Assembly: GCA_021613535.1 (NCBI GenBank)
Contig: CP075495.1
Coordinates: forward strand, 1,178,001-1,242,000
DNA length: 64,000 bases
Source: Adineta vaga
Lineage: Eukaryota > Animalia > Rotifera
Direction of reading: 5' to 3'
Shown: in pieces, positions 4,881 through 31,576 of the stretch
Layout: each line of letters opens with the position of its first letter
How positions within the stretch are numbered: position 1 is the first letter of the stretch
Position numbers and translations under genes: made by a program
The notes under the pieces: generated by a model
What the model saw: the letters and a program-made list of their open reading frames with translations, nothing else
Database searches by the model: none
Told to the model about the DNA's origin: nothing

Positions 4881-6094
4881 AATTTCTCTACTAGAAAAAT
4901 GAGAAGAGTCAATCAATAGAAGATCTTTTTTTTAATAAGAACATCTGTCACTTGTAACAATAAAGAAATCGCCTGAAGCGATTGATTATTTTCAACTTTT
5001 ATTGACAGATAGGAGTCGTTTTTATCTTACTTACTTGATATCGATCACGTTAATTAATATATTGAAAATAACATATGAACAATTGTTGAAATAAAACTCG
5101 TAGAAAAATCTAAAACAACAAAATATTTAGTTATTTATTCTACGAATAATAAGAATGACTCTATGTCATTCTTTGATGTTTTTTATGTTGAACAATGTTA
5201 TCAACTGTTTGTTTTGTTGAATGAACATGTTAATGAATCATTTACTCGTGCATGAATGATATCACACAATACAGAACGACAAAAAACTATTCATTAGATC
5301 AATCATTATCATTGATTGTCTATGTATATATCTACGAAAAAGATATTCTATATACGAATGATTCATCCTATAGTAAGAAGATTATCCGTACAGAGAAAAA
5401 AATTGTATTATAGTTAAGATTGATTTATAGGTGAATAAGAAACACATTTGTTTTCTCTCTATTTATGATTAGATAGGTGTTAATGATTACTAGTGAAGAT
5501 TATCTCATTGAGATAAGATCTAGAGTTTTTTTTTATTGTTTAATAATACGACGAAAAAGTGTGTGAGAATTTGCATGTTGATGTCTATTGAGACACGTGT
5601 GTATATGATTAGATTTATTTTCAAATGAACTGGACAAATAGTTCAGTTGGTAATAATTTATTGTTTTAAATTGAACTTTTAATTGAATTCATATGTCCAT
5701 AACGAATTTATTGTCTGTCTCTTGTGGGTTTTTTTTCTCTCTTTCTGTCTACACTAATCACGCGTTTTCTATGAAAATGAACAAATGCATATTGACCCTC
5801 TAGACAAAATGATTTGCACTTCAAACATTGTCGTTTATTTTTTATCAAAATATCTATAAGAATATTAGTAAAAGGTCGTCTTTCTCGCCATCATATGTTC
5901 AATAGTTCACGTCATCCAATCGAAATATCTATTTTCTTTTATCTATATGCGATTATAATTCAAAATTCCTCACATAAGTAACTCTGCTTATAAACTATAT
6001 TTATGTGTAACAAAGTTTAAATCTTTCCGATTAAATCTATTTTTATTAATAAACTAGTTGATCAACTACAAAAAATTAGGGAAAAAAAACCCTG

Positions 6095-9000
6095 TTAAAT
6101 TTGTGGTACAAGAAGTTGTCGAATAAGATATTTTAATTTATCAATTATGGTTTGATCGTTTGGATTAATTCGTTGATAAATTGACAATGCATATCGATAA
6201 TTTTCTAAAGCTGAATACACATTACCATATTTCTTTTCAATATTTCCAATAACAGCATAAGTATTGGCTAAGAAAAGACTTCCACGTGAAGATTTTTTCA
6301 ATTGAGAATTAAGTAAATATTGAAAATATTGTAATGATTGAGAAATATCTTGTTTTTCGAAAAACATATTACCAAGAATTGCATAGATATCTTCCAAAGA
6401 AAATGGTTTAATCGACATATTTTTTGATTTTCTTTCTAAAATTTTATAATAATACATTAAACTTTGTTCTAAATGATGTTTTTCAAATTGATAATTTGTT
6501 AGATTTGGAAGAATTTTATTTTTTGACATTACATTGGTTTGATTTTGATTTTGCAAAGATTTATTTAATATAGAAAATGTTTGATTGAAATCATGTTTAG
6601 CTAAATAAACTTTACCAATGAAATGATAAGCTTCAATAACAGATGGATCATCTTGAGTACGTTTTTTTAATAATCGACAATCAAGTAAACGATTGAAAAA
6701 GATTAATGCTTGATCAAGAAGATTTTTATTTAAACAAATTGTTCCAATTGCTCGATAAATTTTACTTAAATTCGCATGTTCAAGATATTTTCGTGTAAAT
6801 TTTATTGCTAATAAATGTTCAAAACAAGTTAATGCTTGATTTAAATCACCTTTTTCATAGAAAATATTTCCAAGAATTCGATATGTATTACCAATAGATC
6901 GATGAGTTTTAGAAGAAAATTTCAAGTGATCATTGAGTAATTTTTGAAAATAAGTCAATGCCTGATCTAAATGACGTTTTTCAAAATGAATATTACCAAT
7001 ATTATTTAAATCCATCGCAAACTTCGTTTTTTCTTTCGCATAATATGCCAATAGTTCATCAATACGATGCTTTTTTAAATATACTTTACCAATCATCATA
7101 TAAATATTACGAATAATTCCTTCATCAAACGGTTTCTTTTGTAAATGACAATCAAGTAATCGATTATAATAAAGTAATGCTTCACTTAAAAGACGCTTTT
7201 TAAAATATATATTACCAACTATTTCATATGTTTCAGCTAATGAAATATGTTCATAAAGTTTAGTTTGTAATTCATTTTGTAGATATTGAAGATAATAATT
7301 TAAACATTGATCATTATCATTTTTCTCGAGATAAACATCACCGAGTGTTTTATAAGCTTGACTAAGTGATGGATCACCGAGTTTCTTCCTTGTTAATTCA
7401 CTATCAAGAACTTTATGAAAATAAACTAATGCTTGTTTGTAATCTTTCTTTTTTCGATGAGCATTTCCAATTGTGATATAAGTTACAACAATAGATGGAT
7501 GATTCCATGAAAGAGTTTTCGATTGATTATCTAATGCTTTATGATAATAAGATAAAGCTTTGTCTATATAATTTAATTTCATATAAATATCACCATAATA
7601 TCGATAAGTATCTGCAAAATCTGAATGAGTATTTGGAAGAGAATCCAATTGTATTTTATAAGCTTTATCCATTAATTCTAAAGCTTGATTTTGATCATCC
7701 ATTTCAGAATACATCATTGCCATAGCTGAATAAGTATAACTCACATCAGGATGTTCTGCACCGAAAGTTTTTACTTGTACTTCAATTGCTTTATTGAACA
7801 TTTCCGATGCTTTATCTTTTTCATTCATTTTAACATAAACATTTCCTAAATCGATATAATTTTGTGTAATTGAAGCATATGCTGTTGATGGTTGATTATC
7901 GAAAGCTTGTTGTAAATATTTAAGAGAAAGATTATAATTTTCTAATTGAAAATGAATTTGTGCTAAACCAGAATATGTTGTCGATGGAATATTATTAACT
8001 GTTTTTAATGCTTTTTCGTACATGTTAAATGCTAATTGATATTGACTTTGTTTTTTATATATCGATCCTAAAGCGTTATAACATTTAGAAATTAAACTAT
8101 GATCATATTTTGGACAGTTTTTAAATAAATAATCTAATGCTTGTTCGAGATTTTGTATAGCTGATGTACAATCCATTTTTTTCTCATTAACTTGAGAAAG
8201 ACCATGATAACATTGTGCAAGTTCAATTGGATCTGTAATTAATTGATTTTTGAGAATTTTTTCATAATGTTCTTCAGCATCTTTATATTTTTGCATTTGA
8301 AATAAATAAACACCCAATGAAATCAGTCGATTTTCTCCTTCTAATTCTTCGTCCAATGTTGATAAGAAATCTTTCATATCTAAATCAGCATCACCACATA
8401 ATGTTAATCGTAATTTCCAAAGTTGACATTCTTCATCATACCAAACATCATCAAGACGAAATATACATCCAAACATAAAAAGAATTTCTTCTTCTTCAGA
8501 AAATGCACTCAAATGCTTTATATCAGCTAATGGTCGACTTTCACTCTTGATATTCACGTGTATTTCCAATAGAATAGACGTTAATTGATCCGTTGGTGGC
8601 AATCGACTCGTAGCAAATTCGATAGCTTTTGTTTTATTTGAACTTGTAGATAAAAATGAATTCATAGAAAATAATTCACCTTTAGCTGTTTTTAAACGAG
8701 TTAATTCATCTTTACTTATAAATTGTCCACGATAAACAGTAAGTATTGAAGATTTTTGTCGTTTAGAAAATAATTTATGTTCTTGTTTTAATTGTTGATG
8801 AAGATCACGAACTAATTTAGCAAATGCAGTAACATCATCAATATTTTGTGTTCGTAATGCTTTATTCAAAATTCTATAAACACATGTTTCTCTTGTATAC
8901 CAATGAATTGCTTTTTCAGATTCGTATTCATTATCAAATTCTTTCATAACTTTTCTATCACTTGTATTTTCCGGTTTAAAATAACCTAAAATTCCCGATT

Positions 9001-9187
9001 TCATTTCTGATAATTCACTTTTTTCATCCAATAAACGTTCAACAAGTAATTGATACAGAATAAATTGTCCATTCAATGATTTATGCATACTTTGATTATC
9101 TTTCGATGAATATACATTGGTACCCATAGTATCTTCACGTTCACCTCGTGCCAATAAATCATTTTTTACTTGATCTTGTAATATCAT
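6095..9187 (-). CDS. ADP-ribosyltransferase-TPR protein, copy 2
   Basis: VYRGQ, NSFLSTS, SEEEEILF, then a TPR array. Intact 1030-aa ORF paralogous to copies 1 and 3. Confidence 0.9.
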   Translation of the reverse strand: MILQDQVKNDLLARGEREDTMGTNVYSSKDNQSMHKSLNGQFILYQLLVERLLDEKSELSEMKSGILGYFKPENTSDRKVMKEFDNEYESEKAIHWYTRETCVYRILNKALRTQNIDDVTAFAKLVRDLHQQLKQEHKLFSKRQKSSILTVYRGQFISKDELTRLKTAKGELFSMNSFLSTSSNKTKAIEFATSRLPPTDQLTSILLEIHVNIKSESRPLADIKHLSAFSEEEEILFMFGCIFRLDDVWYDEECQLWKLRLTLCGDADLDMKDFLSTLDEELEGENRLISLGVYLFQMQKYKDAEEHYEKILKNQLITDPIELAQCYHGLSQVNEKKMDCTSAIQNLEQALDYLFKNCPKYDHSLISKCYNALGSIYKKQSQYQLAFNMYEKALKTVNNIPSTTYSGLAQIHFQLENYNLSLKYLQQAFDNQPSTAYASITQNYIDLGNVYVKMNEKDKASEMFNKAIEVQVKTFGAEHPDVSYTYSAMAMMYSEMDDQNQALELMDKAYKIQLDSLPNTHSDFADTYRYYGDIYMKLNYIDKALSYYHKALDNQSKTLSWNHPSIVVTYITIGNAHRKKKDYKQALVYFHKVLDSELTRKKLGDPSLSQAYKTLGDVYLEKNDNDQCLNYYLQYLQNELQTKLYEHISLAETYEIVGNIYFKKRLLSEALLYYNRLLDCHLQKKPFDEGIIRNIYMMIGKVYLKKHRIDELLAYYAKEKTKFAMDLNNIGNIHFEKRHLDQALTYFQKLLNDHLKFSSKTHRSIGNTYRILGNIFYEKGDLNQALTCFEHLLAIKFTRKYLEHANLSKIYRAIGTICLNKNLLDQALIFFNRLLDCRLLKKRTQDDPSVIEAYHFIGKVYLAKHDFNQTFSILNKSLQNQNQTNVMSKNKILPNLTNYQFEKHHLEQSLMYYYKILERKSKNMSIKPFSLEDIYAILGNMFFEKQDISQSLQYFQYLLNSQLKKSSRGSLFLANTYAVIGNIEKKYGNVYSALENYRYALSIYQRINPNDQTIIDKLKYLIRQLLVPQI

Positions 9188-9710: not shown

Positions 9711-12700
9711 TTAAAACGGTGTGATAATCTCACGAATATGGAATTTCATATTATTGATTAGACGTAAATTTTTCGGATTCATTTGTTGATATAAAGCTAA
9801 TGATTGTCGATAATTTTGTAGAGCTTTCGGTAGATTTCGTTGTTTATGATAAATTTTTCCAATAACTTCATATGTTTGACCTAATAGTAAATAATCATAT
9901 GGATTCTTTCTATATTGATAATGAAGCAATTGATGATAATATACTAAAGCTTGATTTGTATCTTGCTTTTCTAAAAATAAATTACCAATAATCATATAAA
10001 TTTGTTCTAACGTAAAGTCTTTGAAAGATAGATCTTTTTTCTCAATATGTGTTTTCAATAATGTATAAAAATACAGAATTGTTCGTTCTAAATGACGTTT
10101 TTCTGCATGAATAATTTTCAGATTGACTTTAGAATTGTGTGTTAAATTTCTATTTAAATAATTTGATGTTAAATCAAATGGATTTTTTCGTAGATATATT
10201 TTTCCAATTGTTTTATAAACATTGGTTATGAAAGGATGACCAAATGATTTTAATAATAATTGACAATCAACTAATTGATTAAAATAAATTAATGCTTTGT
10301 TATAATCTTGTTTTTGTAAATAAATTGATCCAATGATTTCGTATAATTCCGATAAAGATGGATCTTCAGGCATTTTTCTATTTAATTTTGTATCTAATAA
10401 TTTTAGAAGATACTCTAATGCTTTATCCGTATTTCGTTTTTCTAAATAAATGCTTCCTAAAATTTGATAAGTTTCAGTCAATGATGAATCAGTTGCTGAA
10501 CGAGTTTGCATTTGTTCTTTAAGATATTTTTCAAAATAATTTAATACTTGATCTAAATGTCGCTTTTCAAAATGAATATTATTAATATCATCATATTTAT
10601 TATTTGATGATTTATTGTTTAATTTATCATAGTATAAGAGAGTATCAGTAATACGTGATTTTTTTAAATATACTTTACCAATCATCATATAAATATTACG
10701 AATAATCGTTTCATCAAACGGTTTCTTTTGTAAATGACAATCAAGTAATCGATTATAATAAAGCAATGCTTCACTTAAAAGACGCTTTTTAAAATATATA
10801 TTACCAACTATTTGATATGTTTCAGCTAATGAAATATGTTCATAAAGTTTAGTTTGTAATTCATTTTGTAAATATTGAAGATAATAATTTAAACATTGAT
10901 CATTATCATTTCTCTCGAGATAAACATCACCAAGTGTTTTATAAGCTTGACTAAGTGATGGATCACCGAGTTTCTTTCGTGTTAATTCACTATCAAGAAC
11001 TTTATGAAAATAAACTAATGCTTGTTTGTAATCTTTCTTTTTTCGATGAGCATTTCCAATTGTGATATAAGTTATTGCAATAGATGGATGATTCCATTGA
11101 AGTGTTTTGGATTGATTTTCAAGTGATTTATAATAGTACGCTAAAGCTTTATCTAAATCACCTATTTTCAGATAGATATCACCAAAATGTCGATAAGTAT
11201 CTGCAAAATCTGAATGCGTATTTGGAAGAGAACTTAATTGTAAATGATGAGCTTTATTCATTAATTCCAAAGCTTTATCTTGATCATCCATTTCAGAATA
11301 CATCATTGCCATAGCAGAATAAGTATAACTAACATCAGGATGGTCAGCACCTAAAAGTTTGATTTGAGTTGCAATTGCTTTATCAAACATTTCGGATGCT
11401 CGATCTTTTCGATTGATTTTTGCAAAGATTTTTCCGATTTCAATGTATGTATTTGCAATCAAGGCATATGCTGTTGGTGGCTGATTTTCTAGAGCTTGCC
11501 GTAAATATTGCAAGGCAAGATAGTAATTTTCTAGTTGAAAATGAATTTGTGCTAATCCGGAATAAGTTGTTGATGGAATATTATTAACAGTTTCTAATGC
11601 TTTTTCATAGTATTGAAAAGCTAAGATATAATTATTGTCCATGGCATAAACTTTGGCTAAATCATTGTATGATTGAGAAATAAGTGGATGATCTTCTTCG
11701 TCGTTATCACAATTTTCTAATAGATAATCAAGTGTCTTATTTAAATGTTCTATAGCTAATTGATATTCTCCTTTTCTTTCATTAACTTGTGCAAGACCAT
11801 GATAACAATAAGCAAGTTCAATTGGATTCTCTGTTAATTTATTTTTTAATATCTTTTGATAAAAGTCTTCTGCTTGATCATATTTCATCATTTGAATAAA
11901 ATAAGTACCAAGTGCAATTAATTGATTTTGTCCTTCTAATTGATTTGCTAAATCTGATGTAAAATCTTTAACATCTGAATCATTTTGTGAACATAATGTT
12001 AAATTTGCAATCCAAAGTTTCAAATTTTTATCATAAGAGATTTGATCAAGATGGAAAATTGATCCAAACATAAACAAGATTTCTTCTTCATCAGAAAATG
12101 CACTTAAATGTCGAATATCTGCATATGATTTTGTTGGTGCATATAAATCAACAACAATTTCTAACAGTATTGATGTTAATTCATCATTAGGTGCTGGTCG
12201 ACTCGTAGCAAATTCAATAGCTTTTCCTCTATTTGTACTGGTAGATAAAAATGAATTCATTGAAATTAATTGCCCTTGAGTCGTTTTCAAACGATTCAGT
12301 TCATCTTTACTTATCAATTGTCCACGATAAACTTGAATTGTTGAAGCATCTTGTTCTTTCACAAATTGTTTATGTTCTTCACTCAATTGTACATCTAAAT
12401 CTTTGATAAAACTTCCAAATGGAATTATATCATCAATATTTTGTGTTCGTAAAGCTTTGTTAAGAATTTTATAAATACACGATTCTCGTGTATACCAATA
12501 GATAGCTTCTGATGAACAATAATTGGCATCGAATTCTTTCATTGTTTGTCGATCATTTTTATCATCAGGTTCAAAATAATTCGTCAATAAAGATTCTTCG
12601 AAAAAATCCGTATTTTTTCCTTCTAAGATTCTTTGAAGAAGAACTTGATAAAGAATAAATTCTCCATTCAATGAATTATGCATGCTTTGACTATCTTTCG

Positions 12701-12779
12701 ATGAATACACATTTGTACCCATCGTATCTGCACGGATATTGTGTTCACCACGATCTTTTTTACGTTCTACTTGGAGCAT
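9711..12779 (-). CDS. ADP-ribosyltransferase-TPR protein, copy 3
   Basis: VYRGQ, NSFLSTS, SDEEEILF, TPR array. ATG at 12779 (MLQVERK) aligns with the start of copy 2. Confidence 0.9.
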   Translation of the reverse strand: MLQVERKKDRGEHNIRADTMGTNVYSSKDSQSMHNSLNGEFILYQVLLQRILEGKNTDFFEESLLTNYFEPDDKNDRQTMKEFDANYCSSEAIYWYTRESCIYKILNKALRTQNIDDIIPFGSFIKDLDVQLSEEHKQFVKEQDASTIQVYRGQLISKDELNRLKTTQGQLISMNSFLSTSTNRGKAIEFATSRPAPNDELTSILLEIVVDLYAPTKSYADIRHLSAFSDEEEILFMFGSIFHLDQISYDKNLKLWIANLTLCSQNDSDVKDFTSDLANQLEGQNQLIALGTYFIQMMKYDQAEDFYQKILKNKLTENPIELAYCYHGLAQVNERKGEYQLAIEHLNKTLDYLLENCDNDEEDHPLISQSYNDLAKVYAMDNNYILAFQYYEKALETVNNIPSTTYSGLAQIHFQLENYYLALQYLRQALENQPPTAYALIANTYIEIGKIFAKINRKDRASEMFDKAIATQIKLLGADHPDVSYTYSAMAMMYSEMDDQDKALELMNKAHHLQLSSLPNTHSDFADTYRHFGDIYLKIGDLDKALAYYYKSLENQSKTLQWNHPSIAITYITIGNAHRKKKDYKQALVYFHKVLDSELTRKKLGDPSLSQAYKTLGDVYLERNDNDQCLNYYLQYLQNELQTKLYEHISLAETYQIVGNIYFKKRLLSEALLYYNRLLDCHLQKKPFDETIIRNIYMMIGKVYLKKSRITDTLLYYDKLNNKSSNNKYDDINNIHFEKRHLDQVLNYFEKYLKEQMQTRSATDSSLTETYQILGSIYLEKRNTDKALEYLLKLLDTKLNRKMPEDPSLSELYEIIGSIYLQKQDYNKALIYFNQLVDCQLLLKSFGHPFITNVYKTIGKIYLRKNPFDLTSNYLNRNLTHNSKVNLKIIHAEKRHLERTILYFYTLLKTHIEKKDLSFKDFTLEQIYMIIGNLFLEKQDTNQALVYYHQLLHYQYRKNPYDYLLLGQTYEVIGKIYHKQRNLPKALQNYRQSLALYQQMNPKNLRLINNMKFHIREIITPF

Positions 12780-13935
12780 TTGGTTTGATTTCGTAGAAAA
12801 AAAATCTTTAAAAAAATGAAAGAATACTTTCACTCAGTCAGACATAACATTATGAGATATATGTATATATATACTCTACTCAACTGTAATGTTGGTATGC
12901 TTGTTAAAATTTCAATATCAATAAGTAGTATAGTCTACTTCTCAGAGAAAAGCATAATAATTTGAGATCATATCATCTATTCCTTAGTTTGGTCACGGAT
13001 GAATCATTGAAATATTCATTTGTCTTGCTACTTATGACACGTACTGGAAAAAGTACTTCTCTAATTATTTATTTTTACTGTATTGATTTGATGTACAAAG
13101 AGTACATTTATTCAATAAGGATAACTTACGAGTTTTCGAACATTAATTCACAAAAAGTTGCAGTTTAGTTCAATAAATAATATCCTATTTTCGACACAAA
13201 AACAAACCTACCTTGATCTAAACTCGAATCAATTCATTTAAACCGAAAAGTACAGTCTATATATTTAGTTTCTTGTCTTTTTTTATCATTATACATATGT
13301 AAATAATTGTCACGGTCGAACATTTGTTGTTAAATAACTTTTTGTAATTAAAGATAAAAAATCTATGATACACATTCTAGTTACGCATATGTTACAAAGA
13401 GAAAAAAACACGATCTTTTTTTTTCTTTTTCATTAGATGTCATAATTAGTTTTCTAAGGACAGATCTATTAAATAAAAAAAATGTATCAAGTATTTCCAA
13501 TGAAAATACGAAAATATACAAATCAAGGTTGTATTTAGTTTTACAATTTGATTTATGCCAGTGAAAGTTATTGAGTTCGTTTATTAACCTTGAGAGAAAA
13601 TCAATCTTGACTCATCAAGTGTAGATATCTGTCGTCATCATTATTCAAGTCAATGGAGACAAAAATAGGACACTATCATTATTATTCGTTTGATTTAATT
13701 GAATATACATATCCGTATCTATATCTTTCAGAAGTATTATTGTTAATCAAAGCAAAAAAAACGTTATTATAGCATATCATTCATCAGTAACTTGTCAACA
13801 TGAATCTTTATATAGGAGATTCGTGGGATAAGCTGGAGACGTTTTCTTTTCTTGCTTATATAGATATAGTACAAGAAATAAAGCATAAGCATTTGATAAT
13901 TATTTACTATATCGACGTACGAAAACAGATCAAAC

Positions 13936-19061: not shown

Positions 19062-19528
19062 TCAAGAAATGATTTCAAACTTCTGAATTCGATTATTTGC
19101 CCAATCAGCAACATAAAGATTTCCTTCCAAATCAAATGATAAACCAGTGGGAAGACAAAGTTGATTTGGTTTATTACCATCTCCGTTTCCACCAACAACA
19201 ATTTCACCAACATTCCTTCCTTTACACCATCGCATTATTCGATGATTCAAACTATCTGATACATAGATTTGTCCCCATTGATCAACAAACAATTCCCTAG
19301 GACAATTCAATTGATTAAGATTATTTCCTTCACCATTTCCACCTGCAACAATTATTCCTTCTTTTGCATCTTTTTCCCATTTCATCACACGATCGTTCGA
19401 ACGATCAGATACATAAACCGATTGTTCATCATCAACAAAGATATAAGTAGAAAAATTGAGTTGATTTAATTGATCTCCTTTTTCATTTCCTTCAGCAACA
19501 GTAATTCCATTTTGTTTGAGTTTTGTTT
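19062..19528 (-). pseudogene. Orphan NHL-repeat exon, 3 blades (internally deleted paralog of the 26373-27265 exon)
   Basis: Same acceptor context (ag|aaacaaaactc, ETKLKQNGITVA) and a near-identical intron block (19627-19688 vs 27293-27356). Blade 1 is fused to blade 4 at NQLN. No upstream effector exon found. Confidence 0.7.
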
Positions 19529-20161
19529 CTGAAAAAAAGAAGAGAGAAGAGAAAAAATATTTTTTCCGAAAAGATGTCTGTTGATAAAAACTCAATTTCA
19601 ACCTTTGTTCGAAAATAGAAAGAAGAAATAATCTTTGAATTGAAGTTTTATCTGAAGATATAATTCGAGAAACTTAAGAAAAGATTTTAAGATTGAGCAT
19701 CGTCAGATGAAAACCATTTTGTATCAAATATTAAATTGTCATTTTAAATTCATTTGATTACTCGATGAATATATTAATAGGGATGTAAGTTATTAATGCT
19801 TCATATATGTGTCGTCAAACGTGTTACTTTGTTCAACTGATGTATTCGTGTAAATGCAAGATTTGCTGATAAATGTCCATTATTACTGATGAATTTTGTT
19901 TTCATTATTTACACATGAGTGGTTAAATCGTGCTAATAGAATTTTGATGAAAAGTCGTCAATAATTGAGGATTTAATGATAGAATTTTCGTTATTTGAAA
20001 TATGACAACTTCGCAGTCTAATTTCATTTTGGTTTTTAAGCCTTAACGAAAAAGATGACAAAATACTGATTACAAGTAGTTACGATTTCTTGTAAACTAA
20101 TTTTCAATTTAAATATTCTAGAATTTACACGAAATATCCTTGTTCAATTAATAAAATCTGT

Positions 20162-21354
20162 TTGTTATTCATAGTTGAATTGATAAACATTCTAACATGT
20201 CTGGAAATTCAATCAGCTCATGAATGGTATTATAGTATTATTGAACGATTAGATTTCAATGATCAATGTCTAACATTTACTTCATCAATTTTAACGAAAT
20301 TGTATGTTACTATAAGACATTCTATAGTGATTTGCTTTATTTGCTAGATGGTCGCTTCAATCAACTTCATACTTTACATGTGATGGCTATTCGTTTTTTT
20401 GATGAATCATCGAAGTCCATTAGAAAGGTATTATAATTAATCACATAAAAAAAAGAGATAATTATTTGATGTTTTCCTTTCTAGGATGAATTGGTTAACC
20501 TAAAGACTTTCTCATTAACCTGTAGATCAGAGATACTTTTTTATGATGAAACACTATTACCACTTCTACATCGAATGTCTCATCTTGAAGAATTATTCTT
20601 AAATGTTTGTATCGAACGTTATATTCTTCATAAACCATTTATTGATGGAAATAATTTGAAGAATAATATAGTGAATTATATGTCAAAGTTAAATAGATTC
20701 GTATTTAGTATTCATTCTAATCTTATACATCGTTTCAAACATCATTTATTAAAATTACCCTCCAACAATGATATTCAAGATACATTTAAAGATTTTAAAG
20801 ATTATCAAGTTGTTTCCTATACTGATTATTTTCGCCAAACTAGAATGAGTCAATGTCATATCTATTCATATCCATATTATATGGATAGTTTATATCGTCT
20901 TACCCATAGTTTTCCAGGTGGATTATTTAAATTTGTTCACAAAGTTTATTTATTTAATGAAAAACCTTTTGAACATGAATTTTTCATCCGAATTGCTCAA
21001 GCATTTCCATATCTTAAGACATTATTGATAGACAATGATTCACGACAAAAATACCATCAACATTTACAATCAAACAAAAATCTCGAAATAATCAAATATT
21101 CTTGTCTTAATCTACTTATCGTTTATAGTTCTCGCGAAGATTATTTGGAACAGTTTCTAGATAATAATAAAACATGTCTGTTAAATGATATTAAACTTCA
21201 CGTCGACTATAATATACTTCACTCAGTAACGGACAATTTCTCAAGAGCTTTGACACGAACCAATTGCGAAAAAATCACATTTATCAATGATATTAATAAA
21301 TGTAATGTTCCAAAACATTTTTATAATTATTTTCCTCGTATCGAAAGATTGTAA
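20162..21354 (+). pseudogene. LRR (F-box-associated type) family gene, 5'-degenerate and frameshifted
   Basis: Motifs LYLLDGRFNQLHTL, LLHRMSHLEELFL, FIDGNNLK, HIYSYPY, FPGGLF, PFEHEFFIRIAQAFP. Frameshift near 20310; intron 20428-20484; no clear start. Confidence 0.6.
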
Positions 21355-22691
21355 CTTGTCTTGCTCGCAGTTAATGAAAATAAAATAAACATTATGAAGG
21401 TGTCGATGCACCTTCTTATCTTCAAATATGATCAATTAGTTTTGATTAAATAAAAATTCAAAATCAAAGTTTTAAATATAGAGATATAAGAGCTATAGCA
21501 TCATTATTCTTGTAGATAGCAGTGCTGATATAATTTACATGTATTTTTATTCCCTATCAGAAAACCATCTGACCTATTTCTGATCTTATTTGATAATAAG
21601 CTTTGACGATATGTATATCATGAAAATAGTGCCTCGCGCTTTTGTCATGAACGCCATCAAAGATAATATCATTATTCGATTTTCGTCGTTGTCTTGACCA
21701 ACAACAACAATATTGACATGTATCGTTCATTCGTATGATTAATTTTGAATCGATTTCATTTGGATATAATGAATGATAGAAATAGCATGCAATAACACCA
21801 ACAATTGCGACAGTTCCTACAGCATTGATGCATACCACATGTGAATGATTGAATAAACATTAAGTAATGGTTAGCTTTAAAAGTATATTGAAATGAGAGA
21901 GAGAGAGAAAATTAATTCGTAGTTTTTCACTATTCGGATTCTAAATTAAAAGTCAATATTAATGTTAATAAGTAACTTTGTAGAATAAAACTTATCCTAC
22001 AAAGTGTATTTTATGTACAAAATAGTTCTTCATAAAATGCTTATAGTTTGCAGTTAAAGCTTAGTTCGATATCATATTTTATACAGAAACATTCGGCAGA
22101 CATGATCCGTGCATACTAACTTTTTACGCTTGTCAAAAATTGCTTCAACAACACTTTTCACCTGTACTAATTGCTTTTTAGTGATCGGAAAAAATGAAAC
22201 GAACATTTTATCTCAAGACTTTTGTAACAAGGTTTATAATAATATATTTACTTTTATGTTTTCTTCTGCAAATATACTCTGGTGGTGTATTTTGAAGTTG
22301 TCGATGATATGCTATCATATAGAAAAGTTCTTTTGATCATTTAAAGACGTTTTATAGATACAATAACGAAAAAGTTCTGAAAGTGGCATGGTTACGTTTA
22401 TTTTTCGGTTAGACATAGAGAAGAATGTAAGCTGTTGCCATTCATAATCACAGGACATTCTTATGATATATTGGCTTCTAAATAGTAACAGGGTGAGGGT
22501 ACCTTAGACGAATCAAACTCTCTCACCCACACCCTCAAGATGGTTTTTGTGCGTTCTTTTATTTCGAAGTAAACGTTCGACAGTGTTTCTCAGTACTTAT
22601 TTTGTTTTTTTCGGTCGTTCTTCTTCCGATGTTTTTGTTTGTTGACAGGTAATGATGCATAACGCTTAACTATATCTAGGAAATAGATGAC

Positions 22692-22698
22692 TATAAAA
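22692..22698 (+). promoter_or_regulatory. TATA box of the Cys-repeat gene
   Basis: TATAAAA about 65 bp upstream of the ATG at 22762. Confidence 0.5.
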
Positions 22699-22761
22699 AG
22701 AGAAATATTACCATTAACATATAGTTATTTATCACATTGAATAAAACTTTCTGGCTATATT

Positions 22762-23880
22762 ATGAATTTTAAAGTACTTTTCTTCGAACTTTTTCTTTTA
22801 TTACTGACAAAATCACCACTTTATGAAGCAGTGATATGTAGTGGTGTTACTCGAACTGGTAATGCTTGCTGTGGTAGTATAGGTTATTCTTCAGCTACCA
22901 GTGTTTGTTGTAGCGGTGTTGTCCGAACTGGCAATGCATGTTGTGGTAGTACAGGTTATTCTTCATCTGGCAAGGTTTGTTGTAGCGGTGTTGTCCGAAC
23001 TGGAAATGCTTGTTGTGGTAGTACAGGTTATTCTTCAGCTGGCAATGTTTGTTGCAGTGGTGTTCTTCGCACTGGCAATGCTTGTTGTGGCAGTACAGGT
23101 TATTCTTCAGCTACCAGTGTTTGTTGTAGCGGTGTTGTCCGAACTGGAAATGCTTGTTGTGGTAGTACAGGTTATTCTTCAGCTGGCAATGTTTGTTGCA
23201 GTGGTGTTATTCGCACTGGCAATGCATGTTGTGGCAGTACAGGTTATTCTTCAGCTACCAGTGTTTGTTGTAGCGGTGTTGTCCGAACTGGCAATGCTTG
23301 TTGTGGCAGTACAGGTTATTCTTCAGCTACGCATGTTTGCTGTGGTGGTGTTATACAACCTGGTAATGCATGCTGTGGTAGCACAGGTTATTCTTCAGCT
23401 GGCAATGTTTGTTGCAGTGGTGTTATTCGCACTGGCAATGCATGTTGTGGCAGTACAGGTTATTCTTCAGCTACGCATGCTTGCTGTGGTAGTGTTGTAA
23501 AACCTGGCAATGCATGCTGTGGTAGCACAGGTTATTCTTCAGCTACGCATGCTTGCTGTGGTGGTGTTGTTCGAGTTGGCAGTACATGCTGTGGTGACAC
23601 AGGTTATTCTTCAGCTACTCATGCTTGCTGTGGTGGTGTTGTTCGAGTTGGCAATACATGCTGTGGTGGCACAGGTTATTCTTCAGCTACTCATGTTTGC
23701 TGTGGTGGTGTTGTACAACCTGGCAAGGTTTGCTGTGGCAGCATAGGTTATTCTACAGCTACCAATATTTGTTGCAGTGGTGTTATTGGAACAGGCACTG
23801 CTTGCTGTGGTAGCAAAGGTTATTCCTCAGCTACCAGTGTTTGTTGTAATGGTGTTATTCGATCTGGGCTTTCATGTTAA
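22762..23880 (+). CDS. Secreted galaxin-like di-cysteine repeat protein
   Basis: Signal peptide, then about 14.5 copies of the 24-aa unit CCSGVVRTGNACCGSTGYSSATSV. Confidence 0.85.
   Translation: MNFKVLFFELFLLLLTKSPLYEAVICSGVTRTGNACCGSIGYSSATSVCCSGVVRTGNACCGSTGYSSSGKVCCSGVVRTGNACCGSTGYSSAGNVCCSGVLRTGNACCGSTGYSSATSVCCSGVVRTGNACCGSTGYSSAGNVCCSGVIRTGNACCGSTGYSSATSVCCSGVVRTGNACCGSTGYSSATHVCCGGVIQPGNACCGSTGYSSAGNVCCSGVIRTGNACCGSTGYSSATHACCGSVVKPGNACCGSTGYSSATHACCGGVVRVGSTCCGDTGYSSATHACCGGVVRVGNTCCGGTGYSSATHVCCGGVVQPGKVCCGSIGYSTATNICCSGVIGTGTACCGSKGYSSATSVCCNGVIRSGLSC
22834..23877 (+). repeat. 72-bp coding tandem repeat (~14.5 units)
   Basis: ggttattcttcagct recurs every 72 bp. 22981-23124 and 23125-23268 form a near-identical 144-bp higher-order unit. 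Confidence 0.9.
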
Positions 23881-25089
23881 AGTAATATTTTCAGGTTGGG
23901 AATTGTATACGCGTTTTATATCACTTCTATAGTGTTTCTCATAAAGCTTTCGGCTCGTGACAGCTAACACTCTCCGATAGCATTGATGGCAATATAGTGT
24001 ATTTTATGTGAAAAGAATTATGAGCTTTTTTCAAGTAAAAAACGGCACCCATGCTTTCGTTTTCAAGATAACATTGGCTATATATATATATATTTATAAC
24101 TAGAAGAAAATCATTTACTTGATAGTTCATAAAATCTTATCTTTTCTTTGTAGAAACTTAAACTGGTATATCAAATATTCCAGCAACAAAGCCGTATTCC
24201 AACGTGACGTTTCTTATTAATCCATTTTTTGTGATGTTTTCTATTTACATTCGACATGTTTTTTTTCTTAATTCCGAATAAATTACCTTGTTTAGAAAGT
24301 AAATAATATGCAGGATATTAAGCGTCAATAAAAATATGATCTAGTTTGAATACGCATAAAGTTGCCTATAGGAAGTAAAAATGCATGATAAATTAAGATA
24401 AAAATGCAAAAATCATATACATGATTTCGACAGCTGATAGAAGTATGATTTTGTTTGTGGGTCGTCACCCTCGAGAGGTTATAAAAATCATACATACATA
24501 CGTTAAATTAAACGTGCTGATCGAGATATCATCAAGTTTGTTTACGTGTACAGTTACCAAGAGAAAGAAAGAACGTAGCATACATACAAAATAAGTATAC
24601 AAAGATTGTAAAGAAATTGTTGAGTAGTAGACTTTTCTTTTGAAGGCATTTGTAATCAGCCGATGTATGACTTTGTTCGTTGGTTAACATTGCCGAGATG
24701 TGACGATAAGAACTTGTAATTGCATGCACCACAGTAAACTTCAATGAAACTTATCAGTTTCTTTCTGTTATTTAAAAACGAAATTAGTGGATAATATCTT
24801 GAAGGTGTGAGTTAGCTTAAGGTCGATAACGTGGCTATATTTCGTGTTTCGTTCTTCACTTATATTTATATCGTTATTACAAACGCTATAATTGCATTTT
24901 ATATTTTATATTCAAAAGAAACAGTAATTAAGAAAACCTATTTGAAACTACGTGTGTCTTCTTTAATGTACTGGATTGAATAAAAAGAAAAGTATATAAA
25001 AGAGGAAGTTATAAAGTGTGAATTATTTAAGAATTTTATAATCAACTTATTATAGAATATTTCATTTGATAAAATTATAAAATTAACGT

Positions 25090-26290
25090 TAAAACACTGT
25101 TTGAATCAGAAGAAATTATTTCTTTACCCGTATTAGATTGACTTTTTGAAGATTTTCTCCAATAATTTTGACTTCTTCATGATCATCGTTGTTGAATTTC
25201 GATCTAAATATTTTTGATCCATTCTCTAAATATGGCTGTTTCCTCGTAGATGTTGAACTTCATATGTACTAAACCAATTTGTTGAAATGTTCGAGCAATT
25301 TCAAGTTGAGCGGGTAGATAAATCTTATTCCGAATTTCTAATGATTGTTTTAAATAAAGTAAAGCTTCTGTATAATTTCCATTGTGAATTTCTGTTTCAG
25401 CAATAGCATTTAAACATTCTATATTCGATTTATATTGAGACTTCTTATGAATGTCTAATAATCTTAATGCTTGTTCATACTGTTCAAAAGCCTTCTTATT
25501 ATTCTTACTTTTAAATGCAATGTCACTCAGTAGTTTTTGTATTTTCTAAGACTTGGTTGTCCAAATTCTAAACGTGTCTTGTATTCATTTAACTTTGTTT
25601 CACAAAACTTCAATGCATCATCGAATTTCCCTATTGCTTCATAATTCTTTCCCCAATAAATAAAACCTTTTCATTGTATTCAATTGCTTCTGCAAAGTCA
25701 GAAGTAGAAAAGAAGATCGCAGCTCTATTACTTAATGGACGATCAATGAGAAAATGATTTTTGGATAGTTATTTTTTTCAAATATCATAGGCATGATTGA
25801 ACATTTCTTTTGTTTTTTGATAATTTTTCCTTCGTAAATTAATATTACCGATTTCAACTGAGAATAGAGCATTTTCTATGATAGTTCATCCATGGTAACT
25901 AAAAGACGACCGAACATAACATGAAAACATAGTTCTTTCTATTCTTTATTGGCATAGCATCGATATATTTATGTACGACTGTCGATCGTTCATTGGTTAA
26001 AGTCATTTTGACAATCCAAACTTTCAAAATTTCATTATCAAAATATGCTTCATCGATTTTAAATATAAACGAAAGATTGAATAAAACTTCACGTTCATCA
26101 GATATGTTGCTTTGTTCTCGAATATCAGCAAATATAACAGATTTAAGCGATGAATCCACAGTAATTATAAATTATACTGATTGAATAGGATTCGTTTTCG
26201 ATAATCTCGGACGTAAGAACATGCTTGCAAGGGTGTGGGTGGGACTGATCGATAAATATACCATTCACACACCCTCACTTTCACCAACAG
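25090..26290 (-). pseudogene. ART-TPR pseudogene, 5'-truncated
   Basis: YLSIS...QSV*FIITVD...FADIREQSNISDEREVLFNLSFIFKI...VWIVKM, then TPR remnants (NYTEALLYLKQSLEIRNKIYLPAQLEIARTFQQIG) with stops and frameshifts. Confidence 0.8.
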
Positions 26291-26372
26291 TCAAAAAACG
26301 AATTTTTGGTTATAAAAAATATTTTTATTGAAAATAAAAATTATTTTTTTTTGTTCAAATTCAATCGTTTTA

Positions 26373-28457
26373 TCAAGAAATGATTTCAAACTTCTGAATT
26401 CGATGATTGTACACATCAGCAACATAAAGATTTCCTTCCAAATCAAATGATAAACCTTTGGGACGATAAAATTGATTTGATTCATTACCTTCTCCATTTC
26501 CACCAACAACAATTTCACCAACATTCTCTCCTTCATTCCATCGCATTATTCGATGATTCAAACTATCAGCTACATAGATTTGTTTCCATTGATCAACAAA
26601 CAATCCTTGAGGCCAACTCAATTGATTCAAATTAACTCCTCTACCATTCCCACCTACAACAATCGTTCCTTCTTTTGCATCTTTTTTCCATTTCATCACG
26701 CGATTATTCGAACGATCAGATACATAAATCGATTGTTCATCATCAACAAAAATATAAGATGGCCAGTTGAGTTGATTTAGTTTTTCTCCTTTTCCATTTC
26801 CACCAGCTACTAATGTTCCTTCTCCATCGTCTTCTCCAACTTTCCATCTTCTTACTTCATTCTTCCAACAATCAGAAACATAAAGAAATCCAAATTTATC
26901 CATTGATAAACCCCAACAATGAATATTTTCAATAAGAATTTCTTGTTGATTTTGATTCAACCATCGAACTACTCGAGCATTTCCCCAATCAGCAATGATG
27001 ATTGAGTGATTAGATTGATCAACAATCACATCTGTTGGTTCATACAATTGATTTATTCTCTTTCCATTTCGATTTCCACCTGCAATGATTTGTCCATCTT
27101 CCGCATTGTATTTCCAATGAATGATAAGATGATTTCCATAATCAGCAATATAAATATTTTTGTGTTCATCAACAAAGATTCCATAAGGTTCATTGAGTTG
27201 GTTTAATTTATCACCTTTTCCATTTCCTCCAGCAACAGTAATTCCATTTTGTTTGAGTTTTGTTTCTAATAAAGAAGAAAGAGAGAAAAAACAAATAATC
27301 TTTGAATTGAAGTTTTATCTGAAGATATAATTCGAGAAACTTATGAAAAGATTTTACTGGGAAAAAGATTTGAAGATTAAGATCAGTTTGATCTGTTTTG
27401 GAAAAAGAAAATTTCACTTCTAAAAGATATTCAGATATGTTTTTAACCTTATCTCAATTAAATCAAAAATTTAATGATAAAAAACTAAAGAATTTTTTCT
27501 TTGTAACAAATCAAATTATAAGAAATCCAAAGTTTCATTGTATTACTCAATCTTTTCAAATATTTTTGTTCTTTTGTTTAATATTTTCATGGTTTTAAAA
27601 GATTTGAATAAAATTTTCTTAAATGAAAAATCCAATAAACAATATTTCAATAAAATATCAAAAGTCAAATTACCTGAGAGATGATTTGATGCGATATTGT
27701 TAGTTGAAATCATTTGATTAGTTGTTGATATTGTCATTGATTCCATTTGTAATAATGGTGATACAATTGTTTCAAATGGTGGAATCTTTTCACGTAAATG
27801 AATTATAAATAAATCATTTGTTGCTTTCATTTTATCAACAACTTCAAAATAAGTTCCAGGTAACAAAAGAATTTCATTCTCTTTTTTAAAATATGAATGA
27901 GATTGAATTGATTTTCCATATGAACATTCAATGTTAAACACGGTTCTTGTCGAATTATTTCCCATAAATTTTTCAATTTTTGATATTGTTTCTGTACAAG
28001 AACTGATTCCCCACCAGAAATGATCATTATTATATTGATCAGATAAATTTCCTTCGACACCACGCCAAATTATTCCTCGATACGATGGAAGTTTATACAA
28101 AGCTGTGAGAAATAATTTAAGAAAATAAAACCATGGAATTAAATTATTTCGATCTTGTGAACGAAGTTGTTCGTTAAGTAATGTAAATAAACTTGAATGA
28201 GGTTGAGGCCATTGCATTGTATATAAATGAATTGAAGCCGATTCATCTTTTGTTAAACCATCTGCAGGGTTTCTTGAATTTCTCAATGCAATATCAATCA
28301 TTGTATCACAATTATAAAGTAAAGAATTGATCGGTTGAACAGCATCTTTTAATGAAACAAGTGGATAAATTTCATATCCACTAATTGGTGTTAAGATTTG
28401 TTCTGGTTCTTGATCAGCATCAAAAAAACGTTGTGGAATATTTCTTCTTTGAGTCAT
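26373..28457 (-). CDS. NAD:arginine ADP-ribosyltransferase-NHL repeat protein (exons 28457-27674 and 27265-26373; 558 aa)
   Basis: DGLTKDESASIHLYT, IWRGV, WWGISSCT, ENEILL (R-S-ExE). A phase-1 splice G|AA joins it in frame to six NHL blades. Confidence 0.8.
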
Positions 28458-29166
28458 TGATGAATCGTTAAAAGTAGTTTTAATGAAATAAACAATGTTC
28501 GTTTGTAATGGTTGAATGATTTTGTTTGAGTAATATTGTTTTATATATAAATTAGCAAATAGGAAGAAAAGAACGGATCGATAACATATTAAGATTGAAA
28601 GAGAAAACATGTTTTATAATTAAATAAAATTGTTGATAAATAAAGAAACAAAATGAAAATATTTTTCTTTGATAAATTAAATTTCACAAAAGATTTGAAC
28701 AAAATCTTATAATTCAAGATAATCGATATTCTACGAAATATTTTTGATTTAAATGAAGAATTTAAAAAAAAAGATTTTTCAATGAATTTAACAAAATTTA
28801 TAACAATAAAATTCACTAAAATATTTCTTTTCTTTTTTTTCAAAGGTTTAATCATTTCATATATCTACATCGTTTGTATTTCAATTGATTAATTTTCTTT
28901 TATTTCAAAAACAAATATTTATTTGAATATTTAATAGAAACCATCAGTTGTTTCGTTTGTGTTTTCAATGCTTTTTTTAGTTTTTAATTTCATTTGAATT
29001 TTATTGAAATATTTTAAAGAAAAGAAAAACATTAAAATAATAATTCTCATTTGAAAATAAAATTAACATCTTTTGTTTTGATATTTTCAAGATATTTTAC
29101 ATTTGATTTTAGAAAATAATTTGTTTAAATCGAAATTAAGGTTTTATTTGTTTAATTTTCATAATT

Positions 29167-31576
29167 TTATGAATAAATTATTTCAAATTTTTGAATACGA
29201 TGATTCTCCGAATCAACAACATAAAGATTTCCTTCCAAATCAAATGATATACCTTCGGGACTACGACACTGATTTGAGTCATTACCATATCCATTTCCAC
29301 CAACAACAATTTCACCAACATTCTTTCCTTCACACCATCGTATTACTCGATCATTCAAACTATCAGCTACATAGATTTGTTCCCATGGATCAACAAACAA
29401 TCCTTGAGGCCAATTCAATTGATTCAAATTATCTCCTCCTCCATTTCCACCTGCGACAATTATTCCTTCTCGAGCATCTTTTTTCCATTTCATCACACGA
29501 TTATTCTGTGTATCAGATACATAAACCGATTGTTGATCATCAACAAAAATATAAGTAGGAAAGTTGAGTTGATTCAGTTTTTCTCCTTGTCCATTTCCAC
29601 CAGCTACTAATGTTCCTTCTGCATCGTTTTCTCCAATTTTCCATCTTCTCGCTTCATTCTTCTTTGTATCAGAAACATACAGATATCCAAATGTATCCAT
29701 TGTTAAACTCGAACAGTGAATATTTTGAATGAGAATTTCTTGTTCATTTTGATTCAACCATCGAATTACTCGTTTATTTCCCCGATCAGCAATGATCATT
29801 GAGTGATTCGATTGATCAACAATCACATCTGTTGGTAAATTCAATTGATCAATTCTCTTTCCTTCTCCGTTTCCACCAGCAATAATTTGTCCTTGTTTTG
29901 AATTGTATTTCCATTGAATAATACGATGATTATATCTATCAGCAATATAAATATTCATGTGTTCATCGACAAAGATTCCATAAGGGTAGTTGAGTTGATT
30001 TAATTTCTCACCTATTCCACTTTCACCAGCAATAGTGATTCCATTTTTTTTCCGTTTGTTATATTTTAATTCTGAAAAATAACCAAAAGAAATTTTATTT
30101 CCTTGAAATCAAATAGAATTGATACTTTTTTAGTAATATAAAAAATAGGACCTGATTTGTAAATTATTTGTATATGAATTTTTCAAAACTATGTCAGAAA
30201 AAAAATTTTCAAAAGATAAAACAAAGAAAAGATCTTCCTGTCGTTTGTTTTTATGTGTCTCGAGACTGATTGTAAACATTTCATGTTTTCTCTACCTATC
30301 TCGATGGATTAAATGGTTAAAAACTGAGAGTGGATATTTTATCCGACGTTGAATTTTGCACAATATAATAAATAATCGAGATATTATTGACAGAAATATT
30401 TGTTTTGGAAAATCAATAATCACCCTCGAGTGATAAGAAGAAAATTTTGCTCTAAATTAATTTTATGAAATAATTACGAGATCATTTTTCTCATTACAAA
30501 AAATAATAACTATAAGATGATGTTTGATGTTTTAATGTTCGTGTTGATAAACATAAGATGCTTTTTCGAACAAATTATATATTTAATCATTTTATTATTA
30601 TTATTATTCCAGAAATAATAAGAATAAATAAAGACAATAATAACTTTTTAAGTCCTATTTTTTTTGGAGTAACTAAATCAGATTCGAATTCTTAATCCTA
30701 AGTCATTCTCAAAATACAGTTCATACCTTGATTTTCATTGTATAAAAATATATGTTTGTGTTTTAAACAAAGAGTAATATGTGGAATCTGTTTATCCTTT
30801 GATTCTTCTGAGACATCATGAGTAACATCAGCCATAACAAATCGAATATCTTCATTGGGAGTTTTGAAATGTTTTAAAAGATATTTTGTAAATAAACCAT
30901 GTTGTTCTTTATTATTTCCATCATCTGCGACTGTTCCAGGAGGACAAGCAAATGCTATTAATGATCCAGCATTTACAATCATTGGTTTTAGTCCTTGTGG
31001 ATAATTGATTTGTTCACCTCGAGCATTTTGTTGTGATTCAACATTGCGTAAAGGATAAGTTCGACAACAATCTAAGAAAAACATGGTGACGAATGGTTTT
31101 TTATCATTAATTTCATTAAGAAGATCTTGTGCGTTGATTGCAAGTCTTTTCAGATCAGAACCACTTAGTGCAACATTCTCAATAACACCATTCTTTTTCT
31201 GTTCTCTGAAGTTGTCGACTGAAATTAGATAGTTTTGTTCCTAAGAGTCAATCAATATCAAAACTATAGTTTTAACTATTCTAATTACCTCCCATTGTGT
31301 TCCATGTCCAGCAAAATAAAATAAAACCATATCTCCTGTTTCTATTGATGACTGAAAATCAGTGATAGTATCATAGAATTCTCTGTATGTTAGATTTATC
31401 TGTGGTTCATCACCATAAATAATAAATCCGATATTTTTCAACATAGACGCCATTTCTTTTGCATCATTGATTGTATTTGGTAAACGTCTGTTCATAACAT
31501 AATCACTAATTCCAATTACAAGCGCTCTTTTACGACGTAGATTATTTGAAGATATATTTTTGATCGCAGTAGCCAT
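29167..31576 (-). CDS. Caspase-like (peptidase C14)-NHL repeat protein (exons 31576-31289, 31240-30727, 30071-29167; 568 aa)
   Basis: RALVIGISDY, NDA, FYFAGHG (His), NYLI, FLDCCR (Cys), GLFTKYLL, QIP. A 48-bp intron and a phase-1 splice G|AA lead to six NHL blades. Micro-exons in the second intron cannot be excluded. Confidence 0.8.

Follow-up and report, generated by a model that had tools for sequence, protein, structure and literature searches.

Positively selected hypervariable codons on the predicted top face of a large NHL propeller family in the rotifer Adineta vaga

The DNA considered here, hereafter the window, is a stretch of 64,000 nucleotides of Adineta vaga (assembly GCA_021613535.1, contig CP075495.1, positions 1,178,001 to 1,242,000 of the forward strand), in which NHL propeller repeats are found at three loci: a gene with an NAD:arginine ADP-ribosyltransferase (ART) domain, a gene with a caspase-like domain and an orphan fragment. 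Copies of this propeller share a conserved framework and differ at a recurrent set of codons; at these codons nonsynonymous changes are in excess over synonymous ones, the selected codons map by strand topology almost entirely to one side of the propeller, and some copies are mosaics of others. The explanation that we regard as probable for the whole of these observations is that of an NHL family with a diversified recognition surface, shaped by selection together with gene conversion limited to the NHL exon.

The sequence-only reading of the window had proposed that the blade scaffold is conserved between copies, with the variation concentrated in the residues flanking the proline of an x-P-x motif and in a D-x-x-N loop, and all the tripeptides and tetrapeptides that it quoted are present in the ART, caspase and orphan exons. 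Since only the window copies had served to define them, the 24 sites quoted in this way could be treated as an a-priori class; they are numbered along exon 2 of the ART gene, the reference, where the first base of codon p is window base 27263-3(p-1) of the minus strand. With the ART-copy propeller as query, a search of the 100.8 Mb assembly (six contigs) returned 926 first-look candidate NHL-exon matches, and at least 132 were scored, all with E < 1e-85 and 48-77% identity. The sample analysed consists of the DNA of 48 further full-length copies, and the resulting alignment holds 50 non-redundant exons over 296 reference codons with few gaps. Most of the highest entropies in this alignment fall at the 24 quoted sites (3.0-3.6 bits and 11-17 residue types, against near 0-1 bit in the scaffold), which confirms the proposed division between scaffold and variable residues. 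Secondary peaks occur in two motifs, G-N-G-x-G of the d-a loop and N-x-R, in both cases at the x. The idea of two variable sites per blade thus describes real sites and gives too low a number, about five codons varying per blade: the variable set is composed of four core codons per blade plus accessory ones, with 31 significant codons in all. Among the 24 sites themselves, T77, G94 and T169 are only weakly variable.

Codons 25, 27, 42, 43, 75, (77), 93, (94), 115, 117, 132, 133, 167, (169), 184, 185, 217, 219, 234, 235, 267, 269, 284, 285 (ART exon 2 numbering, minus strand): the 24 quoted core sites, hereafter hypervariable (HV) codons
Codons 16, 66, 96, 170, 208, 258, 287 (ART exon 2 numbering, minus strand): accessory variable codons

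The contrast between the two classes of site is evident among copies that are otherwise nearly the same. In a near-identical clade of 17 exons, nucleotide diversity at the first, second and third codon positions is 0.52/0.57/0.41 at HV codons and 0.07/0.04/0.05 elsewhere, and amino-acid identity is 18% at HV sites vs 89% elsewhere. The peaks are sharp at the codon level, with synonymous diversity one or two codons away from HV codons at only 1.5-2 times the background; this profile served as a check for hitchhiking and regional hypermutation, and it favours neither. In the window, the ART and caspase copies differ at 16 of the 24 core residues and are 80% identical in the scaffold.

A nonsynonymous excess at these sites, as sought by the dN/dS check suggested for the family, was found in a pairwise partition, in the pair of window copies and in maximum-likelihood (ML) analyses of two paralogue sets with no member in common, and an even spread of substitutions with no such excess is rejected. 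In eight phylogenetically disjoint close pairs, from which the window copies were excluded, HV nonsynonymous changes amount to 220/468 and interleaved scaffold synonymous changes to 64/1304 (odds ratio 17, Fisher p = 4e-89); in these pairs the dN/dS ratio (omega) of HV codons is 10-32 per pair and that of the scaffold about 0.6-1.4. Over the whole sample, HV omega exceeds 1 in 23 of 24 disjoint pairs. For the ML analyses we used our own codon likelihood of the MG94 type, with F3x4 frequencies, a constant kappa of 2 and a single tree built beforehand from scaffold sites; the per-site tests took the scaffold synonymous rate, the fixed effects likelihood form with site-specific synonymous rates being without power (likelihood-ratio test statistic, LRT, of 0.9 at site 25). 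In the 17-exon clade, scaffold omega is 0.78 and HV omega is 17 when referred to the scaffold synonymous rate, or 2.5 with a synonymous rate of its own (LRT 18.2, p = 2e-5). After Bonferroni correction 31 codons of this clade have omega > 1, namely 22 of the 24 quoted sites together with codons 16, 66, 96, 170, 208, 250, 258, 287 and 296. In a second set, of 33 more distant copies outside that clade and with both window copies among them, scaffold omega is 0.35 and HV omega 2.3, and the 14 sites that pass Bonferroni correction all lie inside the a-priori 24. Finally, the comparison of the window ART and caspase copies gives a proportion of nonsynonymous differences at HV codons of 0.49 and a proportion of synonymous differences in the scaffold of 0.18, and a ratio of HV dN to scaffold dS of 3.8 (range 2.5-3.8), with a scaffold omega of 0.50.

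The residues found at HV sites are enriched in Tyr, Ser, Gly, Cys, Thr, Arg and Trp, and one stop codon occurs in total. Compared with the scaffold, Tyr accounts for 10.9% of HV residues vs 2.5%, Cys for 8.2% vs 1.0% and Trp for 6.8% vs 2.2%; Arg is mildly enriched (7.0% vs 5.2%) and Lys depleted (2.6% vs 6.2%). The window itself is AT-rich, with about 28% GC and short introns that break the open reading frames (ORFs). A composition of this kind is usual for binding sites, unlike what neutral drift would give in an AT-rich genome.

The propeller of the ART copy was modelled with AlphaFold2 from a 45-sequence alignment, with a mean predicted local distance difference test score (pLDDT) of 94.9 and a predicted template modelling score (pTM) of 0.92. 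The model has 24 strands in six blades, and the N-terminal strand completes blade 6. Foldseek matched it to Pizza6, Thin, TRIM2/3/71, PknD and the Brat NHL domains with TM-scores of about 0.8, and a profile search of PDB sequences was concordant (Pizza7H, E = 4e-65); the domain is a bona fide NHL propeller. According to the legend of Fig. 5B in PMC4015489, the top surface of NHL domains is made of the b-c and d-a loops and the bottom surface of the a-b and c-d loops; the same paper describes the top surface of Brat as an RNA-binding platform and places the active site of PAL on the top surface. In the human TRIM-NHL proteins the top opening is a diverse putative interaction surface (PMC9634614). 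On the model, 29 of the 31 selected codons of the close clade are located in d-a loops, in b-c loops or in the first three residues of strand a, and none is found among the 64 residues of the bottom loops (Fisher p = 1e-11); codon 250, where a strand d begins, and the C-terminal residue are the two that lie elsewhere. In the 33-copy set, 14 of 14 selected sites fall in top-face elements (p = 7e-7). The proposal that the variable residues lie on one face is therefore supported by the predicted topology in both sets. The variable residues would form three concentric rings, with the x-P-x residues at the entrance of the channel, the D-x-x-N residues of the b-c loops at mid-radius and the G-x-G-x residues of the d-a loops at the rim.

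The history of the exon is not that of the genes that carry it. In the close clade, exons are 92-94% identical when HV codons are included and about 97% identical without them, and identity drops 30-60 bp outside the exon, the flanks being 75-84% identical or unalignable. Genes with unrelated N-terminal modules have exons about 94% identical: between L014, a gene with a zinc-finger-like motif and a coiled coil, and L012, a gene with an ART domain, homology is limited to 1459-2585 (94%). More generally, the identities of flank, exon and downstream sequence are discordant between loci. The pair L012/L019 shows 99.6% identity over 1154 bp upstream and 97.5% in the exon scaffold, and differs at 15 of 24 HV residues; its 45 nucleotide differences fall in 33 codons, two of them being synonymous, and for 27 of the 33 codons both alleles recur in other paralogues. 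In the pair L028/L030 the HV sites are all identical in blades 1-3 and differ in blades 4-6 alongside a burst of scaffold differences, which points to a mosaic with a breakpoint near codon 145. In the four-gamete test, 31% of scaffold-informative site pairs fail (18% below 50 bp, 34-38% at 50-300 bp), with at least 15 recombination events (Rm). A permutation test of the pairwise homoplasy index type for recombination was not significant (p = 0.76), incompatibility being high at all distances beyond about 50 bp. Taken together, exon-limited identity, discordance with the modules, mosaics and four-gamete failures show that ectopic gene conversion centred on the NHL exon is pervasive and often of short tract. 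Conversion can also re-assort HV codons between copies, as the 27 of 33 L012/L019 codons with both alleles in other paralogues imply. Neutral conversion alone, however, cannot give the pattern, because HV sites and nearby synonymous sites would be homogenised alike, yet their diversity differs 10-fold. Two observations belong here. The NHL exons of L024 (C3:107738-111616) and L025 (C5:121198-125076) are 100% identical on different chromosomes, either through a very recent inter-chromosomal duplication or conversion or through a duplication in the assembly. The NHL exon of L012, otherwise intact, has Ala for the near-invariant Asp131 and Glu for the conserved Gly149, and this copy may be a recently disabled member of the family.

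Several points weigh against the reading of diversifying selection on a recognition face. With a synonymous rate specific to each class, the 33-copy set gives an HV omega of 1.15, not significantly above 1, as expected from saturation at this distance. The synonymous rate fitted inside HV codons of the 17-exon clade is about six times the scaffold rate, a difference that could stem from multi-nucleotide changes, from conversion or from a local rise in mutation rate. Recombination breaks the single-tree assumption of the ML test. Since conversion gives the scaffold of the close clade a spuriously young look, the values of 10-32 obtained there overstate HV omega, which is 2-4 among non-homogenised copies. 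Moreover, the sample covers 50 of many copies with just one close clade, and the faces were assigned from the DSSP strand topology of the model.

One alternative is relaxed constraint only, in which unimportant loops drift neutrally on a conserved framework, with no positive selection at all. Surface loops tolerate change in general, and the value of 1.15 in the distant paralogues is what such drift would leave; in close pairs, however, HV nonsynonymous change is about ten times the interleaved synonymous change, at the significance given above, and omega in the close clade remains 2.5 even when HV codons are given their own synonymous rate. Bottom loops of similar length hold no selected site, and residue usage favours Tyr, Trp, Cys, Ser, Gly and Arg, contrary to what an AT-rich mutation bias would give, with stops avoided. 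We consider relaxed constraint very unlikely as the sole explanation.

The dN/dS excess could also be an artefact of concerted evolution, the HV codons being merely old and the scaffold rejuvenated by conversion, so that the excess would say nothing about selection. Conversion limited to the exon is real, and it accounts for the difference between an omega of 10-32 in the close clade and of 2-4 in copies that are not homogenised. Nevertheless, interleaved sites would not come to differ 10-fold in diversity unless the HV codons were selected or were targets of mutation, and HV omega against scaffold synonymous change stays at 2.3-3.8 in non-homogenised copies; for these two reasons the artefact would alter the magnitude of the excess and not its sign, and we judge it unlikely.

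Targeted mutation, in turn, is the core of another possibility, namely that a programmed mutagenesis of specific codons, similar to that of diversity-generating retroelements or of deaminases, writes the variation, rather than selection acting on ordinary mutation and conversion. Near-identical genes that differ at most HV codons (15/24 in L012/L019) and peaks so sharp at the codon level speak for it, and the roughly sixfold synonymous rate leaves it a small opening. Against it, the variation involves every base and each of the three codon positions and bears no signature of a particular base, for example adenine-only change; copies that share an HV residue almost always share its codon (one difference in 360 pairs for Cys, Tyr, Thr, Gly, Phe and Gln); and adjacent synonymous sites are barely affected. 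The recurrence of both alleles at 27 of 33 codons and the mosaic tracts are as conversion predicts, and the loci read, which do not amount to an exhaustive survey, showed neither a template repeat nor a linked reverse transcriptase. Programmed mutagenesis appears highly improbable to us, and the reading retained is that of selection on a recognition surface combined with exon-limited conversion.

The exons of the three NHL loci of the window are the following.

27674..28457, minus strand: ART gene exon 1, NAD:arginine ADP-ribosyltransferase domain (Pfam PF01129, E = 1.5e-11)
26373..27265, minus strand: ART gene exon 2, six-bladed NHL propeller of 296 codons plus stop (Pfam PF01436, E = 1.9e-26)
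31289..31576, minus strand: caspase gene exon 1, N-terminal half of Peptidase_C14 with the His of A-G-H-G (Pfam PF00656, E = 8e-16)
30727..31240 (acceptor approximate), minus strand: caspase gene exon 2, C-terminal half of Peptidase_C14 with the Cys of D-C-C-R (PF00656, E = 1.2e-12)
29167..30071, minus strand: caspase gene exon 3, six-bladed NHL propeller, 77% identical to the ART copy
19062..19601, minus strand: orphan, which opens with the shared exon start, lacks blades 1-3 by deletion and continues at once into blades 4-6

The ART gene has a probable start ATG at 28457, with a further in-frame ATG upstream at 28610; its exon 1 ends in phase 1, with the GT donor at 27673-27672, and leads straight to the NHL exon across one intron, with no NTPase domain between. 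The ART domain matches its profile with 44.5 bits (cutoff 22.3) and contains an E-N-E motif and candidate Arg and Ser residues, recognised by eye, for the catalytic R / S-x-S / E-x-E set. In the caspase gene, the donor of exon 1 reads GAG|GTAATT, exon 2 ends in phase 1, and the phase-1 junction of the NHL exon is at the same position as in the ART gene. Exons 1 and 2 score 58.8 and 48.5 bits (cutoff 21.4), and the His and Cys of the two motifs, read by eye, are the putative catalytic dyad.

Against the NHL profile (cutoff 20), the ART copy scores 91.2 bits, the caspase copy 80.7 and the orphan 51.0. The orphan has three blades instead of the six of a closed propeller, and in it the invariant residues G154, P168 and G220 are replaced. 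Its FST, previously taken as one more variant of x-P-x, is instead the loss of P168, a proline kept in 45 copies. No remnant of an ART, caspase, B-box or DED domain was found upstream of it, and the orphan is probably a decaying three-blade relic, which in our reading arose when the segment between two similar d-a loops, those of blades 1 and 4, was deleted. Partial NHL copies stand beside full-length ones also elsewhere in the sample (L036:4432-4737, L042:267-982, L029:3366-3884 and L045:1-204). In the L036 copy the exon start is fused directly to a blade-4-like sequence, as in the window orphan, and since the two share this joint, three-blade deletion products may arise repeatedly.

The N-terminal modules of the 48 sampled loci are diverse. 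The commonest, found in about 15, is a Cys/His zinc-finger-like motif followed by a coiled coil, whose match to the B-box is below threshold (E = 0.0015); an ART domain is present in 13 and a DED-like domain, also sub-threshold, in four, and the others are caspase-like or of unknown types. Pfam scans of the upstream ORFs revealed no RING domain in any of them and no NACHT or NB-ARC NTPase, and no signal peptide was noticed by eye in the N-terminal sequences read, that of the ART gene included. About 1.5 kb upstream of one NHL family gene an ORF for a piggyBac-type DDE transposase is present (L033:4877-5878, minus strand; PF13843, E = 5e-46).

The NHL loci of the window have neighbours that deserve mention. 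Three tandem single-exon genes of about 1030 amino acids each (1833-4916, 6095-9187 and 9711-12833, all on the minus strand) encode long tetratricopeptide repeat (TPR) arrays, preceded at the N-terminus, in two of them, by a weak ART match, and are 48-61% identical overall; we read them as a second family of effector plus repeat sensor beside the NHL genes. Residues about 601-720 of the second and third of these genes are 97-98% identical and look like a gene-conversion tract. Two adjacent genes for ADP-ribosylglycohydrolases (57671-58618 and 58874-60880, plus strand; PF03747, E = 3e-62 and 1e-76) stand in the same window as five ART-domain genes, and their products may reverse ADP-ribosylation. 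A Cys-rich tandem-repeat ORF of 372 amino acids (22762-23880, plus strand), with galaxin-like repeats (PF24748, E = 3e-101), sits in a GC-richer stretch (39%) with strong GC skew, and an ORF of 287 amino acids with no Pfam match (20491-21354, plus strand) is located between it and the orphan. A weak match to glycoside hydrolase family 43, below the cutoff (E = 2e-7), is found at 440-1531 on the minus strand.

These observations can be assembled in a single scheme. The family would be a very large one of paralogues, each with a six-bladed NHL propeller at its C-terminus and, spliced or fused to it on the N-terminal side, an interchangeable module that is an ADP-ribosyltransferase, a caspase-like protease, a DED-like domain or a putative zinc finger with coiled coil. 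Purifying selection would preserve the framework of the propeller, and exon-limited gene conversion would homogenise it again and again between genes, while about 30 codons of the top face would escape homogenisation, diversifying selection keeping the copies different and conversion reshuffling the codons. The outcome would be a germline repertoire of propellers that differ in their binding surfaces and are coupled to effectors of cell death or of protein modification. The suggestion of a diversifying recognition surface, made from the window alone, finds support in the dN/dS excess and in the placement of the selected codons; its functional side we infer, in that the HV face would bind ligands, these ligands would be non-self, and their binding would activate the N-terminal module. 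In its simplest reading the family is an intracellular sensor-effector system in which the propeller face recognises diverse ligands and is coupled to ADP-ribosylation, proteolysis or death-fold signalling, and it is the architecture together with the evolutionary signature that suggests an immune, non-self role.

Receptors diversified on a repeat domain are known with LRR, WD40, TPR, ankyrin and SPRY scaffolds. None on NHL propellers was found described in the literature searched, and the literature on NHL domains in bdelloids or Adineta, and on diversifying selection in NHL domains, yielded no description of the HV pattern. NHL is listed among the repeat families expanded in Adineta vaga, for which roles such as defence have been suggested in passing (PMC3846280). 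It is possible, and we advance it tentatively rather than as the expected outcome, that bdelloid rotifers have an undescribed class of animal innate immune receptors: hundreds of intracellular NHL propellers with a paratope-like HV top face, linked to effectors (ART, caspase, DED) with no NTPase switch and re-assorted by exon-limited conversion, a functional analogue of the NLR repertoires of plants and fungi on a different sensor fold. If the HV face does bind non-self, the family would offer a tractable case of receptor diversity in an asexual animal reliant on gene conversion, a new sensor scaffold for comparative immunology and, for protein engineering, a library of propellers randomised by nature at about 30 positions.

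Among known systems, the closest in fold are the TRIM-NHL proteins (Brat, LIN-41/TRIM71, TRIM2/3 and Thin/TRIM32), which share the six-bladed propeller with TM-scores of about 0.8 and whose ligands bind the top face of b-c and d-a loops (PMC4015489, PMC9634614); some rotifer members also have a zinc-finger-like and coiled-coil N-terminus. The family could accordingly be thought of as ordinary RNA-binding regulators of this type in many duplicates, with no recognition repertoire, an idea favoured by the fold, nearest to TRIM-NHL propellers and PknD, and by the resemblance of the commonest N-terminal module. The top face of TRIM-NHL proteins, however, is conserved and basic, whereas that of the rotifer family is hypervariable between copies and Lys-poor, with no strongly basic face such as that described for Brat; no RING was found in the upstream ORFs and the B-box remains sub-threshold; the modules include ART, caspase and DED-like domains; and the copies are hundreds, compared with 3-5. 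We find this last alternative scarcely credible, and, given that no RING was found, the rotifer family is not one of TRIM-NHL proteins. In the PDB, both sequence and structure match best to PknD of Mycobacterium tuberculosis and the Pizza propellers derived from it, and in PknD too an NHL sensor is attached to a signalling enzyme; PknD, however, is bacterial, extracellular, single-copy and not hypervariable.

A parallel in evolutionary terms is found in fungi. The WD40 propellers of the fungal NLRs HET-E, HET-D and NWD combine a near-identical framework with positive selection at few positions per repeat on one face, with concerted evolution and recombination, and with cell-death effectors. 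The rotifer propeller would likewise be a sensor, with a conserved framework, a selected face, concerted evolution and coupling to cell-death effectors, and the likeness to HET-E drawn by the sequence-only reading holds for this outcome, concerted evolution plus selection at few positions per repeat. It fails for the unit: blades within one rotifer protein are 27-54% identical in blade-shifted self-matches, for which reason the family is not a HET-E-type repeat array, and what is homogenised is the whole NHL exon across paralogous genes instead of tandem repeats within one gene. Nor is the family one of NLR/STAND receptors, because no NTPase domain, NACHT or NB-ARC, was seen in the scanned upstream ORFs. 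It differs also from the targets of diversity-generating retroelements, as its variation involves all codon positions and bases and not template adenines. TRIM5alpha, the B30.2/SPRY domains of fish finTRIM proteins and the LRRs of plant NLRs are rapidly evolving or multigene receptors with positive selection in the surface loops of a C-terminal sensor; here the sensor is an NHL propeller, not SPRY or LRR, and the effectors differ. With its conserved repeat scaffold, positively selected face and concerted evolution, the rotifer family works like these diversified receptors.

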